Source of the DNA: Basidiobolus meristosporus CBS 931.73
Lineage: Eukaryota > Fungi > Basidiobolomycota
Reading direction: 5' to 3'
Assembly (NCBI GenBank): GCA_002104905.1
Contig: MCFE01000240.1
Location: 1 to 64,000, forward strand
Length of the DNA: 64,000 bases
The position numbers and the translations under genes are program-made. Shown here piece by piece: positions 21,838-31,386 of the stretch. The notes below the pieces were generated by a model that saw only the letters and a list, made by a program, of their open reading frames with translations, made no database searches and was not told the DNA's origin. The first letter of the stretch is position 1. Each line of letters opens with the position of its first letter.

Positions 21838-24800
21838 TTAATCTCTGGGATGGACATTGCTGGATCTGTAGGGCCCAGGTACCTGAAGGGTGGTCTGCCT
21901 GATGTATGTGATCAGCAAATCGGCGAAGTGGTTCCATTCTTGCTGTAGTAGTGGAAGGCACATGTCGTCCGGATTGGATCCAAGCTTCGTTGGGTCTACC
22001 AGCGTGGTGAAAAAGGGGCAGTAATCCACCTGGTCTGGCGCTGGCTCCTCCCTCGGTAGATCCTGATCCTCCAGCCAGCTCAGGTATTTCCCGTGGAGTG
22101 ACTGTGGTTCGACCAGATCCGCCCTCGTCAACACGGTGCAGATCTTGGGGATCGTGATCGCCCCGTCGAGGATCAGGATGGAGTAGATCCTCTCCTGTTT
22201 GAATTGGATGAACTGCTCGACGAGGTTTTGCAGGTGGGAGGGAATGGATGTCACATCAATCTTGTAGGCCTCATAATCGATATGCATTTGCATGTGAGGA
22301 TCAGCCAGCGTTTCAATGGATTGGAAGATTCGTCGGCTCGCTTTCACATGCCAGATCTGAACTCCATCTTCGATACACAGTGTAATCTCCCCAGACAGGT
22401 TTGAGGCCCCGTCTATGATGCCGATGCCAACAATGGACCCCGTAATAGCCATACGTGGCTGCTCATGAAACACTCCTGGAATACGTCTAAGGCAGGGTGT
22501 GGTGGATGCGTTGCGGGTTGGGCTGGGTTCCAAAGCCATGGTCTTCGCATTGGGAAGTTGGGCTGTCATGACCAGAGGAGTCAGCGAGTATGGTGCGGGT
22601 GCGGGTGCGGGTGACTGGGTGAACAAATCGTTGTGTGCCACGCTTCCATGCTCGGGAATCTCTTCCGTAGAAGCGATCAACGTTTTCACATGGGCAGAAT
22701 TTCTATCAGGACAGCATTAGTATTGGCTTGAGCACAGATCAGTTAACCGCCCTTACTTTTTGATCCAATCCTCGATACACAATCCGGCCTGCCTGAGATG
22801 TGGAATCCGAACGAAAGGTTTGATCTCTGTATCTTGGGTAACGGATAGCACATGGATGTTGCGCACCGGATCATTTCTTATGTACAGTAAATTTACAAAT
22901 CCGAAAACGTCATTTGCCTAGAGCTCATTAGAATCCATCCATTCCAATCCATGGTATCGTTGAGGATTAGTACCTTTAAGCCTCCTGCTTTGCCATTGGT
23001 GTTGATCTGTATGATGGTTTGCGAGCAATCGGATGCGTAGACAGAGATGTCTTGTGGCTTCTCATTTGCGAGGCTTGCATAGCAATTGACGGAAAGCACC
23101 ATCAGGGCCATATCTACTTCTTGGCCTCTACTATAGCCACCGAGCTCGTCACATCCCGTCGCTCTTCTGGGGATGAACAGGGATTTAAGCTTGTCTTCCG
23201 AGGAGATCTTCATCTCTTTCCAGCTGGTGGTGCGACTGGCCGTCAGGTTTATTTGTTTCCGGGGGGAGAAGGAGGCGATCGTTTTGTTCGACGCGGAGAG
23301 GGAAAAAATCTGAACACCAGTCGGGGTCAGAATCTCAGCCACCAACATCCATGTTTCTATCCGACTTACTTTATATCTGTGGCCTTCGAGCAGCATATCA
23401 TAGATGCTCGGATCAGGTCTCCAGATTGTGATGTAGGCTTCGTTGGGATGTGTGATGCCTGGTCGGTCACAGATGCGTATCTTGAAGAATGGGACGACAT
23501 TCCGTTTCTGTTTAGAGCTCTAGTTCGATGGGTAAAATGGAAAATGAGCCAGAATCTATTGATTAATTTCAAGTACACATACCTCGAGGTGCTCATGTAT
23601 CTCTTGCATCATTTCATTTTGCTGGCGTTCCTTGTCTTGGAGCATGTATTGCTCAAGTCGAGCCCTTTGGACTGAGGTCAAACCTTCAAGGAATCCTGCA
23701 GGATCAACATGGTTTGACATCTCATCATGGAGCTCTTGTCCACTTTCCATATCGCTGATACCTGAGCTCTAAAGTTAGCGAGACGCCTTTTTCGATAGAA
23801 GCGGGAAAACTCACTCTTTCTCTTTCCCTTTCCCTTTCCTGAAGACTTTGGCGTATTACTTTTGCTAGGAGTGTATTTGTCAAAGAGAGAACTTGCCTCG
23901 GCAGCAATTCGATCCTAAGCCGTGCACATGTCAGTCACACAAACGTCCGTCTTTGTTGTGTTATACCGAGACCTACCTGGGTTTCCCTTTCCTTCACTTC
24001 CTCCTCTTTCGCGTTGCGGAAAATCTTGGTTCCGTCGGGCTGAATCTCCATATAGCACATTGGGTACTTGCGCATCACGATAGCATCGACGCTAGAAATT
24101 AAGCCACCATCAGGTGATATCGCCCCAAGAGTGATTTCGAACGCCTTTTTGCTATATCCGAGCTTTGCGTCCCATGGGGCTATTCTGCAGCTATTCGTGG
24201 TGATTTTGAGCGAAGTCGATTCGCTTACTTCCAGCGCTGGGGTGGCTTCCGTTGAACCCACCAACTATCCCAAGGAATGCATTAGATTTCGGTCTGCATG
24301 AACATCATCTATCACAAGCTCACCCGTGCGCCGATTATGGATAACTTGTAGCCGATTCGTAGCTTTCGAGAGTCAATGGCTCGTTGAAGGGGTTTGTCGA
24401 TATGTGTTCGTAGGGAGTACCAGCCGTCTGTCAGCTCAATCACATACTTGGCAACCTCTTGATTCGGCTCATCTGAATAATGGGGAGAGCGTCTTAGCGA
24501 TATGATCCATGCCGATCAAGGCCACTGATTGCGTTGCAAACCTGTAGAAGTCTCAACCAGAATGGTGTCTTTCGTATATGCCTCATTTCGGATTATTCCA
24601 GAGATACAAAGTACCATGGCTTTTGCTGGTGAATCATCACGTTCAATAATTCGTTTCAATGCTGATCGGTGACCAAGATTGATCTCTTTTTCATATCTAG
24701 ATGAACATGCCGTTTGATGTCAGTTTGTTACGTAACATGGGATTATGCTATGCCACACCAACCGGAATCGAAGTTGGTCCATCACTTTCTCTGGTGTCCA

Positions 24801-27800
24801 CCACGAGGCGAATCTTTCTGGATATGATCGAACGTAACTGGCGAATTTCCAGATGATCCAGCGATAATGATTTTCTGTCCATCGATCCGAGAACTGGGGT
24901 GATTTACATCCTAGCGCAACCAACTCCTGATGGGCGTCTTCAAAGCCCCAAGAATCAGTAGCAAACTTCAATCGGCCGTTGGTGGTGGCGGATTTAAAGC
25001 GATATTGGGCTGCATTGGAGGGGTTGATGCTTCCAATCTCCAAGGGGCTAGCATTTACAAGTAAGTCAAAGGTGCGGTTAAACTTGGACCTTGATATACG
25101 TACAGGTTATAACTTCCGAGCGCGTCGAGATCCCTGTTAATAGGCACCTGAGCGAGATCTTTCAACGTGATTCTTGAAGTGGTCGCTGTGATTAAGGAAT
25201 TAATATATAGATGAATCCAGAATTCTCGCATTGCGGTGTATACCTCTCATGTTAAAAATATCGGAAGGGCGAAATGAGGTTTCCTCGCAAGAGGTGCGGC
25301 TGACTTTTTGCGTGACAACAGGTAAGTCATTTTGCTTCTGAGGTCGGGGTGACATCATAGGGCTTTTGAAAGGCTTGCTAAATCTTGAACGAAGTGCCTT
25401 GGGGGTGGAGAGTTGAGCTTTCGAAGATTCTCTCAATCCAGTTTTATCCGCTCCAGCCCTCCCAATGGATACATTGCTGTCCTGGATATTGACGCTTTTT
25501 CGTATAGGTGTCTTGAACAAGGGCCTGATGTTGCTTCGATTCTGGGTTGAACGGAATGGATGGGTTGGTGTGGTTGATATTTCAGCTTTTGACTCCAAGG
25601 TTTCTATTCAAATCCCATAAATCATGTTAATACGTAAACCACAGACTTCGAGTGAAACTCAAGGTATCATACCGTTTGGTTCAACGTGAGATACTCGCTT
25701 TTGATGAATTGCGATGCTGCTCGTTGAGTCAGGATACTGCGGGTTGCGAAGTGATGATGGGTATTTTCCATTATTTGTTTGTTCGGTTTCTATCGATGCG
25801 ATCTGATTTTTCATAAGAGGTGATGGAGAGCCGGTTTGGATATCTCGGATTTTGGGAGATATGATTCCTTCGGTTCCAGAAGATTGCGCTAGAGCTTCGT
25901 TATCCTGCACCGGTTTCGATTTCTCCAACGCTAAATCATCTCCAAAGCAGGCGTTGACGTTAATCTCTTCTTGGCCAAAGAGCTCCTTTGCTTTTTGCAA
26001 AGAAGATTCTGATGGTCCCGCCAGTTTTCTTCCGGCACCAGTCGAAAAACCCAGATTGCTCTTGGCATCAAGATAACCACGGTCGGATGCCGCGTCATCA
26101 GCTAGATCACCAAAGAGCTCCTTTGCTTTCTGTAACGAAGATTCTGATGGTGTTGCAAGCTTCTTTCCAGCACCCGTCGAAAATCCTAGTTTACCTGTGG
26201 CACCAGAATAGCCGAAGTCTGCTGCAGTTTCATCGGGATCACCAAAGAGTGCTTTCGCCTTTTTCAAGGAGGATTCTGACGGTGCCGCAAGCTTCTTTCC
26301 AGCGCCAGTTGAAAAACTTGGAATATCCTTGGCACTAAAATTGTTGTTGTCTAGTGACACCTCATCCATATCACCGAAAAGTTCTTTTGCTCTTTGTAAA
26401 GAAGAGTCTGATGGTGCTGCAAGATTCTTCCCACCACCGGTCGAAAATCCTAGATTACCTGTGGCACCAGGATAGCCGAAGTCTGTTACAGCTTCATCGG
26501 GATCAGCAAAGAGTTCCTTTGCTCTCTGTAAAGAAGACTCTGATGGTGCTGCCAGCTTCTTACCAGCACCCGTCGAAAAGCCTACGCTACTCGAGATGCC
26601 TGGATAACTGTGACCTGCTGTAGCTTCATCAGGATCACCAAAGAGCTCTTTAGCTTTTTGTAAAGAAGACTCTGATGGCGTGGCAAGCTTCTTTCCGGCA
26701 CCGGTTGAAAAGCCTAGATTCCCTGTAACACCAGAATATCCAAAATCTGTTGCAGCTCCATCACGATCACCAAAGAGCTCTTTAGCCTTTTGTAAGGAAG
26801 ACTCCGATGGTGCTGCAAGTTTCTTGCCTGCACCAGTAGAAAAACCCAGGCTACCAGTAGCACCAGGATAGCCGAAGTCTGTTGCAGCTTCATCGGGAGC
26901 ACCAAAGAGTTCCTTTGCTCTCTGTAAAGAAGATTCTGATGGTGCTGCCAGCTCCTTACCAGCACCCGTCGAAAAGCCTAGGCCACTCGAGATGCCTGGG
27001 TAACTGTAGCCTGTTGTAGCTTCATCAGGATCACTAAAGAGCTCTTTGGCCTTTTGTAAAGAAGACTCGGATGGTGTGGCAAGCTTCTTTCCGGCACCCG
27101 TTGAAAATCCCAGATTCCCTTTGGCACCTGGATAGTCAAGTTCAGTTGCAGCTTCATCGAGGTCGCCAAAGAGTTCCTTTGCTCTTTGTAAAGAAGACTT
27201 CGATGGCGCCGCAAGCTTCTTCCCACCACCGGTCGAAAATCCTAGATTACTGGTGGCACCAGGAAAACTGCTGGCTGTTACTGTCTCATCGGGATTATCA
27301 AAGAGTTTGAAGGCTTGCTCCAGAGATGTTTTTGAGGGGGCCGCCAATTTTTTTCCGCTACCGGTCGAGAACGACAGCTGTGTGTCGTCCTCTTTCGAAT
27401 CATTGAATAAAAGAATAGCTTTTCCCAACGCTTCTTCTGAAGGGGGCTTTAATTTCTTGCCTGCACCGGTCGAAAACCCATAGGAATATGAATTCACTAC
27501 ATCCCCCGTAACAGACTCACCACTAACACCATCCGCATTCTCACAAGCCTTTATCAAAGGCGATTTGTAGGGAGAGGTGAGCCTTCCTGTACTATCTGCT
27601 ACCTTACCCGATCCCTTACTGCTAGTGTCAGAGGGAAGATCCTTGGTGCTCTCGGGAGATATTGCTGATGTAGGGCTGGAAGGGCCATCCGAACCGAATG
27701 GATTCTGGTCAGATTTAGCAGTTGTTGATGTCTGCGGTTGATTTTTTGTGGAGTGGAGATCCGACTTGAACCCCGTTGTAAAACCCCCATATTGATTGAC

Positions 27801-30800
27801 AATGGCGGTCACATCCAGATCGTGGAACTCACCTTGAAGGTCTTCCATCAGGGAAGTTTTATCCTCCTTCGAGTTCTCACCGCTGTAGGGTGAGGGATTC
27901 TCAATTCGGACGTCCTCTTGACTGAGCGTTTGGTGAACTGCATTTAAAGATCTTCGTTTCGAGGTTGTATGAAGATCAGAGTCAGCAAAAGGTCGTTTCA
28001 AATGGCCAGCAGTGTCGGTCTGACTTGTGCTTGAGGGATTAGATACACTGTCTTTACTTGGCAATGGCTTTTCTACGGAAGGCTCCGTTGAGTCAGAGGA
28101 GTGATCCGGTTTGTGGGAACCAAGGCTAGATGAAGCATTTTCGAACAATCCCATCGCCTTTCTTAAAGCATCTTTGTTGGGAGGTTGTAACTTTTTACCT
28201 TTCCCAGTAGAAAATCCACCAAATGTTAATAGAGAATTCTCTATGTAGCTAAAGTCAGGCATCTCATCCTTGTCAATTTCCAATTGGTCTATCATTACTG
28301 GCGTGCTATCCGGATTCTGTACATTAGCTAATCGGGGCTTTTTGGAGACCGATGTCAAAGGTGTATTTGTGCTTAGAGGAATCGGAGGCTCATGGTGATT
28401 TGGTCGTTTGGTTGTTATTACAGTTTCTTCACTGCTAGAGCTCTTTCCAATAAACGGGTTAGATCTTGGTGAAGTGCGCTCAACCTTGGGGGTTTTATAA
28501 TTGCGAGCTTTGTTCTGAGCTTCTATTGCCAAAGCCCCAAGCGTCTTAGCTCGAAATATGTTGTCCCCAAGCCCGTTAGTATTGATCGATTTGTTGAGGA
28601 ATAGAGCATTCTCAGTCTCACGTAACTCATCCACACTTGGGAGAGGCAAGATTCGCCCAGAGCCGGTCCGAAACCCCTGTGTCTTTAAAACTGTGAAATC
28701 CAAAGGAGTGCTGGCTTCGAATAAATCTCGATCATTCTCCATTACAGTGGCTAATTCCGGTGACTGTGTTGGCTGATGCTCGTACTCATCGCTTCTGACT
28801 TGTGCTTCATCAGATTTGACACTTGGGATGCATGTCCCATCGATATACTCTTTTTTACAATTAGTACGGATTCAGAAATGATTCGCCAGAGAAACCATTA
28901 CCTTCTGTGTGGTTGTTAGTAATTGGGTCACCCTCAGTGCGATCTAAATTTTGATTGATATTTGGCGTAAATTCGCAGTGCATGCAGTACACACTTGTTG
29001 GGTTACTTGCCTTGACGATCTTCAAAATTGATGCAATTAGGAGGAGTCTAAAAAGAGTGTCACCGTAAGTACATTATAAGTGGGCCTGGGTTTGGGAGGT
29101 ACATGTGTTACCTTGGTATCTGAGTCGAAATCCCCTTCAACTGAAGGCAATAATCCATCTTGTTTGAGCTCTTCAGCTTTGGTAGTGGATTCCACTATGG
29201 TCGATGAACTGTGAGGCATAGTCGTCAGATCACTCTCTTCATTCACTTCATCTAAAACAACTCGCATAAACACTCTAATGTCTCACTTATTCATCCGTGT
29301 GCAGCTACTGTACCTTCACACTGATCATCATCATCTACGATACATCATGAAAGTTATTAACGAACTACTCGTCAAAGCGCAATGTCATCCACCTACCGCT
29401 TGGAAGGTCGGTACATTCAGGGCTCGAGTGCTCTGATTCATTTGGTGTATTTTCAAATAACGAAGGGGAAAGTGGTTGCTCAGCATTTTCGTCTGTTAGT
29501 ACATGCTCTTGAGAGTGTTGCCTATCATTATACGTGGTGTCTATACATTGTGTATCATCACTCTTCTTTCCCTTAGACTCGAAGGGGTTGGATAACCTGG
29601 TAGGACTGCTGGAGTTGGAATGCTCCAGAGCTGAATCTTGCGATATGCTTGGCGACTTGGAAGGTAATTTAAAATTCATCGTCGCAAGTGGTTTGCATTG
29701 CTCTGCATCTCCTTGATGCTCGGTTGAGCCGGAGCTATTTAATAAGAGCTTGCTTGCATTATCGCCTAAAGCGTGCTTCGATGTGTGCTCTGTTTTTAAA
29801 TTACAATCCGAGTCCTTCATGAATTCAATAGAGTTTGAAGTGCTATCCCCATCATCATCATCGTCATCATCACCACCATCACCATCATCAAGAGTAAGCT
29901 CCTTAAGCCCTCTTCTGGGCTTGACTCTGGAAGGAGTATCTAAAGGAGACCATGCGGAACTATTGTCCGGGGTCTGCTTAGATGCTCCGCCCAGAGAAAA
30001 CCGGCGGATTTTCGAAAAAGGGGTGGAAATTCCAGTGGCTTTCGGATTAACGATTTGCGTATTAATATGTACTCGTTGCGTTGGAGAAGACAGCCACCCA
30101 GGCGAGTCGCCAAGATGCTGGTCTAACAGTTTCGAGATCGATATGTGAGGAGAGAGCTCTTCATCATCATGCACATGCGAAAGTGGAGAACCAGGGGTGC
30201 TATGTGGATGTCTGTTCTTACTCGAGGTGTTGGAATTCATTAATACTGTGCTCGGTGTGCTTGCCGTGCTTTTGAATTTCTCGGAGTTTCGCGTAGGCGT
30301 TTTGTTGCCAAAACCTAGGGTACCTCCGTTCTCCAAGGAGAACTTTTCGAACTGGAGGGTCTTCTCACGCATCAGTTGGGTCTTTTGTTGTGTAGGAGTA
30401 AGATCCTCCATCTCGGCCAGTCTAGGGGTCTGGATTCGAGTAGACGGCGTTTCGATTTTATAGTGCCGTTGCGTGTTGGGAGTGTGCAGAAGCTCAGTCT
30501 CTTGAAAAGCACATTCCTCTTGGATCTACAAGAAAAAATGGTTGAGCTGGAAGATCGAGGCATAGGACGAGGGAGGTGATTCAGAATATCGTTGATAATC
30601 GTACTGCAGAGCTCACGTACCCCAGGCATAAGTTGTTCTGCTTTGAATCTTTCGGTTATCTCGTTTTGTATTCCTTGAGGCACAGCCGACCACCAACCGT
30701 CGTCGTCGTCTTCCTCATTACCACCTGTGGTAGTGGAGGGTTCAGTTCCGTCGGGATAGAATTTCTGTAGAATAATGGTATTTCCTCGAGGACATTGAAA

Positions 30801-31026
30801 AGAAAAATTTCTCTCCTTTGACTGACACATCAGCTATTGAGGAAATGACTGAGAAAAGACACCTAAAGTGCAACCAACTATGCTTACACCTAAAGACTGC
30901 AGTCACTTGGATGGGATTTCTATTGGCTGGCAAAGAGATCCAGCACAGAACTGCGGTAAAATATAAACAATTGAGCCATTCACAAACATTTCGCCTAAAT
31001 AAGAAGATTTTGGGAATGCAAGGTTC

Positions 31027-31098
<72 letters not shown>

Positions 31099-31195
31099 GG
31101 GCCTCATTGAAACACTACCCTCCAAAATCCATAGTCTATTGAGAATTTCAGCAATATACAGCTACATCGATATTTCGTAACAAATCTTCACTCAT
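21838..31195 (-). CDS. BRCA2: BRCA2 ortholog (>2400 aa inferred) with 14 BRC-like repeats and a C-terminal helical/OB-fold DNA-binding domain, many exons
   Basis: Helical domain 'WTENHYRWIIWKFASY...VMDQLRFR', OB1 'VIELTDGWYSL', 'NSCRIAPWDAKLGY' and 'DGGLISSVDAIVMRKYP'. BRC repeats lie in the 25659-28742 exon. In-frame splicing was traced by hand from the 30621-30830 exon through 29365-30525 and small exons at ~29112-29250, 29011-29047 and 28902-28943 into the BRC exon. ATG 31195 and some DBD exon borders are tentative. Confidence 0.88.
25970..27480 (-). repeat. Coding tandem array of 12 BRC-like units (mostly 132 bp / 44 aa)
   Basis: FST codons at 27469, 27364, 27232, 27100, 26968, 26836, 26704, 26572, 26440, 26308, 26176 and 26041, giving spacings of 105, 9x132 and 135 bp. 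Consensus GFSTGAGKKLAAPSESSLQKAKELFGD. Confidence 0.95.
31028..31098. repeat. (CA)n/(TG)n microsatellite, about 35 units with one interruption
   Basis: Read directly. Probably in a 5' intron of BRCA2. Confidence 0.95.
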
Positions 31196-31386
31196 TATAT
31201 CTCATACAACTGGCAGCGCATTTAAGGATGTACAGTCCCCGAATGCTAGTGTTAGGGTTTCCAAAATCAACAGTTTATGGGAAATTGTCTTCGGGGAATG
31301 AAAAGAAACATGAGAAATTTGAAGTGATTGAATGTGATACAATTTTGGAGTGGAAAACTGCTACTGTAATGAAACTAATAGAGGTA

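Follow-up and report, generated by a model that had tools for sequence, protein, structure and literature searches.

The reasons why BRCA2 proteins range from one to many BRC repeats are a standing question, and a gene of the fungus Basidiobolus meristosporus CBS 931.73 raises it anew: how did a fungal BRCA2 come by fourteen BRC motifs, twelve of them in tandem, and what keeps them there? The gene lies on the minus strand of the window analysed here, that is, the whole stretch of 64,000 nucleotides at positions 1 to 64,000 of contig MCFE01000240.1 (assembly GCA_002104905.1), to which all coordinates refer. We hold with considerable confidence that it is a BRCA2 orthologue with an old, lineage-specific and selectively kept array of putative RAD51-binding units, a reading for which direct evidence comes from the anatomy of the sequence, from its family membership, from its transcription and splicing, from the lineage specificity of the array and from the purifying selection on its units.

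An earlier note on this DNA had described fourteen BRC-like motifs in one exon of about 3 kb, twelve of them tandem with nine exact 132-bp steps, an isolated repeat near 28208 and a degenerate one near 28667, and a pattern search bears out each of these points. Specifically, the minus-strand open reading frame (ORF) at 25659-28742 encodes 1027 amino acids (aa), with an ATG at 28742 and the same frame still open upstream, and the F of the F-x-T-G motif falls at aa 24, 177, 423, 458, 502, 546, 590, 634, 678, 722, 766, 810, 854 and 899, which places the F codons at 28673, 28214, 27476, 27371 and so on down to 26183 and 26048. From aa 423 on, the spacing is 35 aa, then nine times exactly 44 aa (132 bp) and finally 45 aa. 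Over 25975-27307, Tandem Repeats Finder reports a period of 132 in 10.1 copies (score 1063) and one of 396 in 3.4 copies (score 1470), and a separate repeat search returns this 132-bp register too. The protein contains the pattern F.[ST][AGSV].G 14 times, whereas 2000 shuffled versions of it average 0.34 occurrences and never exceed 3. The Pfam scan suggested in the earlier note, run on the ORF of the BRC exon, matches the BRCA2 repeat family PF00634 at 96.7 bits (E 4.6e-28; cut-off 20.3); scanned singly, 12 of the 14 units match at E<=0.01, and that at aa 423 gives only a weak match (E 0.089). Together with an extra half-motif, the units are arranged as follows:

25673 to 28849, minus strand: large exon with all 14 BRC motifs, 3,177 bp, frame open throughout
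28569 to 28700, minus strand: degenerate BRC-like motif, F at aa 24 (FRTGSGRIL ... ALFLN), a pattern match with no Pfam match when taken alone
28110 to 28241, minus strand: isolated BRC repeat, F at aa 177 (PF00634 E 9.8e-4 alone)
27756 to 27785, minus strand: half-motif GFTTGF at aa 321, without the second (LF) module, found by pattern and with no Pfam match
27267 to 27503, minus strand: the array's first two tandem units, older than the rest, with F at aa 423 and 458 (a 35-aa step), placed by sequence comparison
25944 to 27266, minus strand: the ten core units of the array, with their F at aa 502-899 and a 132-bp period, a lineage-specific expansion

Across the 14 aligned units, the columns F10, T12, G13, G15, L18, P21, L26, L32 and F33 are invariant. 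The first module, Fx[ST][AG]xG, is present in 14 of 14 units in the form F-[SR]-T-G-x-G, with F, T and both G unchanged throughout, and the second, LFDE-type module consists of the invariant L32 and F33 followed by G or another residue and then by D or N. The spacer from F to LF measures 18 residues, as in chytrid units, versus 17 in human BRC4. A profile built from the units matches BRC peptides in RAD51 complexes of known structure (8c3n_B, E 3.4e-4; 1n0w_B, E 2.2e-3), with GFSTGaGKkL and LF aligned and one extra residue in the spacer.

Could the assembly have inflated or collapsed the number of repeats? Assemblers are known to struggle with tandem repeats, and the short-read unitigs of the probable source sample (runs X1 and X2) break at five places within the array. 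However, the units differ at about one quarter of their bases, and the unitigs, every one a 100% match, tile the array at a depth of 143-168 versus 156 in the flanks, with double depth only at a 34-nucleotide piece common to two units. The copy number is consistent with the reads, with no copies collapsed or invented, and an artefact, against which the earlier note had proposed a check by long reads, is extremely improbable.

The gene that carries the array is real, expressed and spliced. In X3, a public run of the same study that behaves as a transcriptome and whose contigs are at least 99% identical to the window, contigs skip six minus-strand GT..AG segments of 52-69 nucleotides (28850-28901, 25604-25672, 24697-24762, 24473-24541, 23915-23976 and 23520-23582), and loose contig ends imply two more introns, at 24265-24323 and 28944-29010. 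The latter is a GC-AG intron with the donor GCAAGT, across which an RNA contig joins 28943 to 29011. Because the introns that flank the array exon, 25604-25672 and 28850-28901, are removed in these contigs, the exon runs from 25673 to 28849 and lies within spliced mRNA; five parts of it are themselves covered by X3 contigs. Further introns upstream and downstream were set by GT-AG ends and phase, including 25048-25103 and 25186-25243 in the helical region, and one exon boundary was set by hand at 29112; phases are consistent across all exons of the model. Domain searches, done exon by exon and with no joined protein, place Pfam matches to the BRCA2 helical, OB1, Tower (weakly) and OB2 domains on successive exons of the same strand downstream of the BRC exon:

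22753 to 30411, minus strand: predicted BRCA2/Brh2 orthologue, exon model of about 2239 aa, start 30411, stop 22753
24763 to 25185, minus strand: BRCA2 helical domain, two exons (PF09169 E 7.8e-14)
23977 to 24696, minus strand: OB1, three exons, the last reaching into the Tower (PF09103 E 3.6e-8, 4.3e-16 and 2.2e-7; PF09121 E 0.0016, weak)
22757 to 23519, minus strand: OB2, exons 23519-22974 and 22917-22757 (PF21318 E 3.8e-6)
24312 to 24884, minus strand: GenBank fragment annotated as 'nucleic acid-binding protein', partial, 131 aa

In addition, the piece 22756-22917 matches Spizellomyces BRCA2 right behind the latter's OB2 match. By its DNA-binding-domain exons and spliced RNA contigs, the locus is a fungal BRCA2, as the earlier note had it, and is best explained as the BRCA2 (Brh2) orthologue of this strain. 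In GenBank, the 131-aa partial model is the sole gene call between 20588 and 31387; no gene is called at 24885-31386, and the BRC exon and the upstream BRCA2 exons are unannotated. Since the BRC exon is unannotated, database searches never returned the window's own protein.

Both ends of the gene model are ones that we infer. At 22753 the stop shares bases with a good donor, GTAAGG, of a 54-nucleotide intron-like segment with an ACTAAT branch site, whose in-phase target is an unannotated 287-aa ORF on the minus strand at 21838-22702. If an in-phase intron at 22703-22756 joins this ORF, the alternative BRCA2 model comes to about 2526 aa. With no match in Pfam and nothing resembling the C-termini of other BRCA2 proteins, the ORF may be either a BRCA2 C-terminal extension or a separate unannotated gene. 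FxPP, the DMC1/RAD51 P-motif, was looked for in each exon and none was found. Beyond the start, a long (CA/TG)n microsatellite occupies about 30960-31060, between BRCA2 and the ATP19 gene next to it, where the promoter presumably lies.

How did the array arise, and when? Over the 27 residues of the motif core, any two of the ten core units share 89-100% identity, but none shares more than 63% with a unit from elsewhere (chytrids, Linnemannia, Kwoniella, Trichomonas, Hydra and others), which argues that the ten-unit expansion is lineage-specific and sustains the earlier note's view of it as independent. The units at aa 24, 177, 423 and 458 are as close to other fungi's units as to their neighbours, and those at 423 and 458 share 43-57% DNA identity with the core units. 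On the simplest reading, about four BRCs are ancestral and one of them was amplified in this lineage.

As to age, most pairs of core units are 62-79% identical as DNA, the exceptions being 590/722 (94%) and 546/678 (88%), and typical pairs have a synonymous divergence (dS) of about 1.4, compared with 0.06 for pair 590/722. With silent sites this near to saturation, the array appears to be mostly old, not recent. Nei-Gojobori proportions of synonymous and nonsynonymous differences (pS and pN) are 0.57 and 0.066 in the 27-codon motif core (pN/pS 0.12) and 0.50 and 0.31 in the linker (pN/pS 0.62), and of 16 core codons that encode one and the same amino acid in all units, 15 show synonymous variants. 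The low pN/pS and these variants indicate purifying selection on the motif of each unit. One part of the array is younger:

26440 to 26725, minus strand: duplicated or converted tract, copy 1, units 678 and 722, 90-94% identical to a stretch 396 bp away
26836 to 27121, minus strand: duplicated or converted tract, copy 2, units 546 and 590, the pair of 26440-26725

At the 396-bp offset, the 90-94% identity is limited to this tract of about 290 bp versus a background of 62-76%, which indicates one or more later events of duplication or conversion. We also considered whether the units form a higher-order period of three and rejected it, the signal being weak outside the one young two-unit tract.

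Run X4, which has the same species label and comes from another isolate or species, contains contigs of 45-135 nucleotides that match array units at 26266-27199 with 90-95% identity and are mosaics of units two to four positions apart in the window; no other part of the gene had an X4 match above 90%. These short mosaics hint that the arrangement of the array differs between isolates.

A recent, unstable and strain-variable expansion of the Trypanosoma brucei type, driven by ongoing unequal crossing-over, is an alternative with which the exact register over nine 132-bp steps, the 290-bp tract and the X4 mosaics of non-adjacent units would all agree. It is nonetheless quite unlikely: in T. brucei there is less than one base change per repeat (PMC2408642), whereas most Basidiobolus pairs show the identities and dS given above, and units so diverged are poor substrates for frequent unequal exchange. 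The adjective 'recent', which the earlier note had applied to the expansion as a whole, fits the tract of about 290 bp and fails for the rest.

Taking the array as old and kept by selection, how might the protein work? In the BRC4-RAD51 complex (1N0W), FxxA mimics RAD51's own oligomerisation motif and fills the RAD51 self-association pocket; on its own, a BRC peptide is disordered. By homology to this complex, F-S-T-G would take the role of FxxA in the self-association pocket, and L-F-G-D would take that of LFDE at a second hydrophobic site on RAD51. The N-terminal half of the protein, taken to be disordered, holds about four older BRC motifs and the ten-unit tandem array, the latter presumably produced by repeated in-register duplication of one 132-bp unit in this lineage. 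As such, one BRCA2 could hold about a dozen RAD51 monomers on a flexible chain and hand them to single-stranded DNA held by the helical/OB1/Tower/OB2 domain, where a recombinase filament would be seeded. The units have diverged at silent sites under a motif held by selection, which indicates that the high copy number is itself maintained, and the young tract of about 290 bp points to occasional unequal exchange or gene conversion that continues. RAD51 binding, its stoichiometry, the expansion mechanism and any link to Basidiobolus biology are points that we infer.

Few of the units might bind RAD51, with the others acting as filler or spacer, in DMC1 binding, or as a filament-binding class like human BRC5-8; after all, a single BRC supports the viability of mouse cells (PMC12803100), human BRCs fall into two functional classes, and the linker evolves almost freely at its pN/pS of 0.62. 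Yet none of the ten core units has lost an invariant motif residue under the strong constraint (pN/pS 0.12), filler would have decayed at such silent-site divergence, and the units are homogeneous, with no sign of two classes, so this division of labour is unlikely.

Several points weigh against the reading of the locus as an old array of RAD51-binding units. RAD51 binding by the Basidiobolus protein is predicted from homology, and the motif has FxxG in place of FxxA and a spacer one residue longer than that of human BRC4, although FxxA and FxxG are both reported among fungal BRCs (PMC10684384). The age of the array is estimated from silent-site divergence as the sole measure, and the order of the units across the five branch points of shared k-mers is that of the published assembly. 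Because X3 has no contigs for 24788-25523, the link from the array exon to the helical exon depends on the spliced joint at 25604-25672 and on the introns placed by phase. In word-index searches, no orthologue from other Basidiobolus or other Zoopagomycota was retrieved: the whole exon gave no matches, the array region matched only Planoprotostelium, Linnemannia and one Logan protein, and the helical exon found only the locus's own 131-aa GenBank fragment.

One of the closest systems known is T. brucei BRCA2, with 15 nearly identical units of 44 aa / 132 bp whose number is strain-variable (Hartley & McCulloch 2008, PMC2408642), a unit length that the earlier note had given correctly. Both arrays (12-15 units in T. 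brucei) are tandem, have the same period, are lineage-specific expansions and end in a more divergent unit; however, in T. brucei the units have virtually the same DNA sequence and differ in number between strains, whereas those of Basidiobolus are 62-79% identical with saturated silent sites. A tandem BRC expansion within a lineage is also described for Drosophila yakuba dmbrca2, by slippage or unequal exchange (PMC2882388); the Drosophila array reportedly has fewer units and, unlike that of Basidiobolus, is recent and polymorphic. Human BRC1-8 have the same two-module motif, and the unit profile aligns to the BRC4 chain of 1N0W, but in human BRCA2 the repeats are scattered along about 1100 residues, form two diverged classes, and have FxxA and a spacer one residue shorter, compared with FxxG in Basidiobolus.

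Within fungi, the Basidiobolus protein resembles Ustilago maydis Brh2 and the BRCA2 of Naganishia and Cryptococcus in its helical, OB1, Tower and OB2 domains and in the flavour of its BRCs (GFxTxxGKxxxxPSxxA, with FxxG accepted; PMC10684384), but those proteins have 1-3 BRCs in about 850-1200 aa, in line with the one to three reported for basidiomycete fungi (PMC10684384), versus 14 BRCs in about 2240 aa or more. More BRCs still are present in BRCA2 of the chytrid Quaeritorhiza haematococci (KAJ3092347.1), which likewise has an expanded BRC set and an 18-residue F-to-LF spacing. Unlike the Basidiobolus array, this 4510-aa protein with about 20 BRCs has units that are near-identical as protein and a two-unit higher order, which points to a second, younger fungal expansion; its units are at most 63% identical to the Basidiobolus core.

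Is a large tandem array then exceptional? A search with the unit profile against 1.84 billion representative proteins gave 417 matches, and the counts that follow refer to the best 150 of these. Forty-three have at least 10 BRC motifs, 29 at least 12 and 19 at least 14, and ten show at least eight near-equal spacings in a row (within one residue), with periods of 33-51 aa. A chytrid fungus, insects, Hydra, a sea urchin and Trichomonas are represented. Examples are Q. haematococci (about 20 motifs, 10-11 of them near-identical, period 50 aa), Macrosteles quadrilineatus (24-26, period 33 aa), Lytechinus pictus (19-21, period 38 aa), Ischnura elegans (20), Diploptera punctata (17-19, period 45 aa), Hydra vulgaris (16, period 41 aa), Dryococelus australis (16, period 37 aa) and Trichomonas vaginalis (14, the number also given in PMC2408642). 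Exact-period tandem BRC arrays, with periods of 33-56 aa, thus recur across eukaryotes and are not special to trypanosomes. The earlier note's picture of convergence on the trypanosome architecture is right about the fixed 44-aa period but overstated, given this recurrence and a chytrid with about 20 BRCs, and its suggested count in other fungi sets the array apart from the two to seven BRCs of Spizellomyces, Zopfochytrium, Siphonaria, Linnemannia and Kwoniella but not from Quaeritorhiza.

Metagenomic proteins with 14-15 near-identical BRC units are among the matches. In the intron-poor genome GCA_048222815.1 (contig JBAMKY010007026.1), an ORF with five BRCs immediately precedes a helical/OB1 ORF, and about 3 kb away lies an ORF with a Rad52 domain.

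Although sequence databases are rich in large BRC arrays of exact period, the literature searched barely discusses them, and in it a 2026 preprint gives the 15 BRCs of T. brucei as the extreme number (PMC12803100). That literature contained no paper describing the Quaeritorhiza array and none linking Basidiobolus with BRCA2, while the fungal BRC survey of Sutherland & Holloman 2023 (DNA Repair 127:103511), which lay outside the search, may mention early-diverging fungi with multiple BRCs.

Taken together, the Basidiobolus array is real and, in the literature searched, undescribed, and similar tandem BRC expansions exist in many other eukaryotes. The locus corrects the picture of fungal BRCA2 as a protein with one to three BRCs, and contrasts with T. 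brucei in that the same period is found in units that are old and individually constrained, which speaks for selection being able to act on copy number, so that it need not be merely a by-product of repeat instability. Whether high BRC valency is an adaptive trait long kept in Basidiobolus, with ten units that have diverged yet stayed conserved as the mark of selection acting on the number of RAD51 molecules per BRCA2, is a tentative and rather doubtful proposition. If true, high valency may relate to the unusual nuclear and genome biology of Basidiobolus, and, with many independent arrays, BRC copy number would be a recurrently tuned parameter of recombination across eukaryotes.

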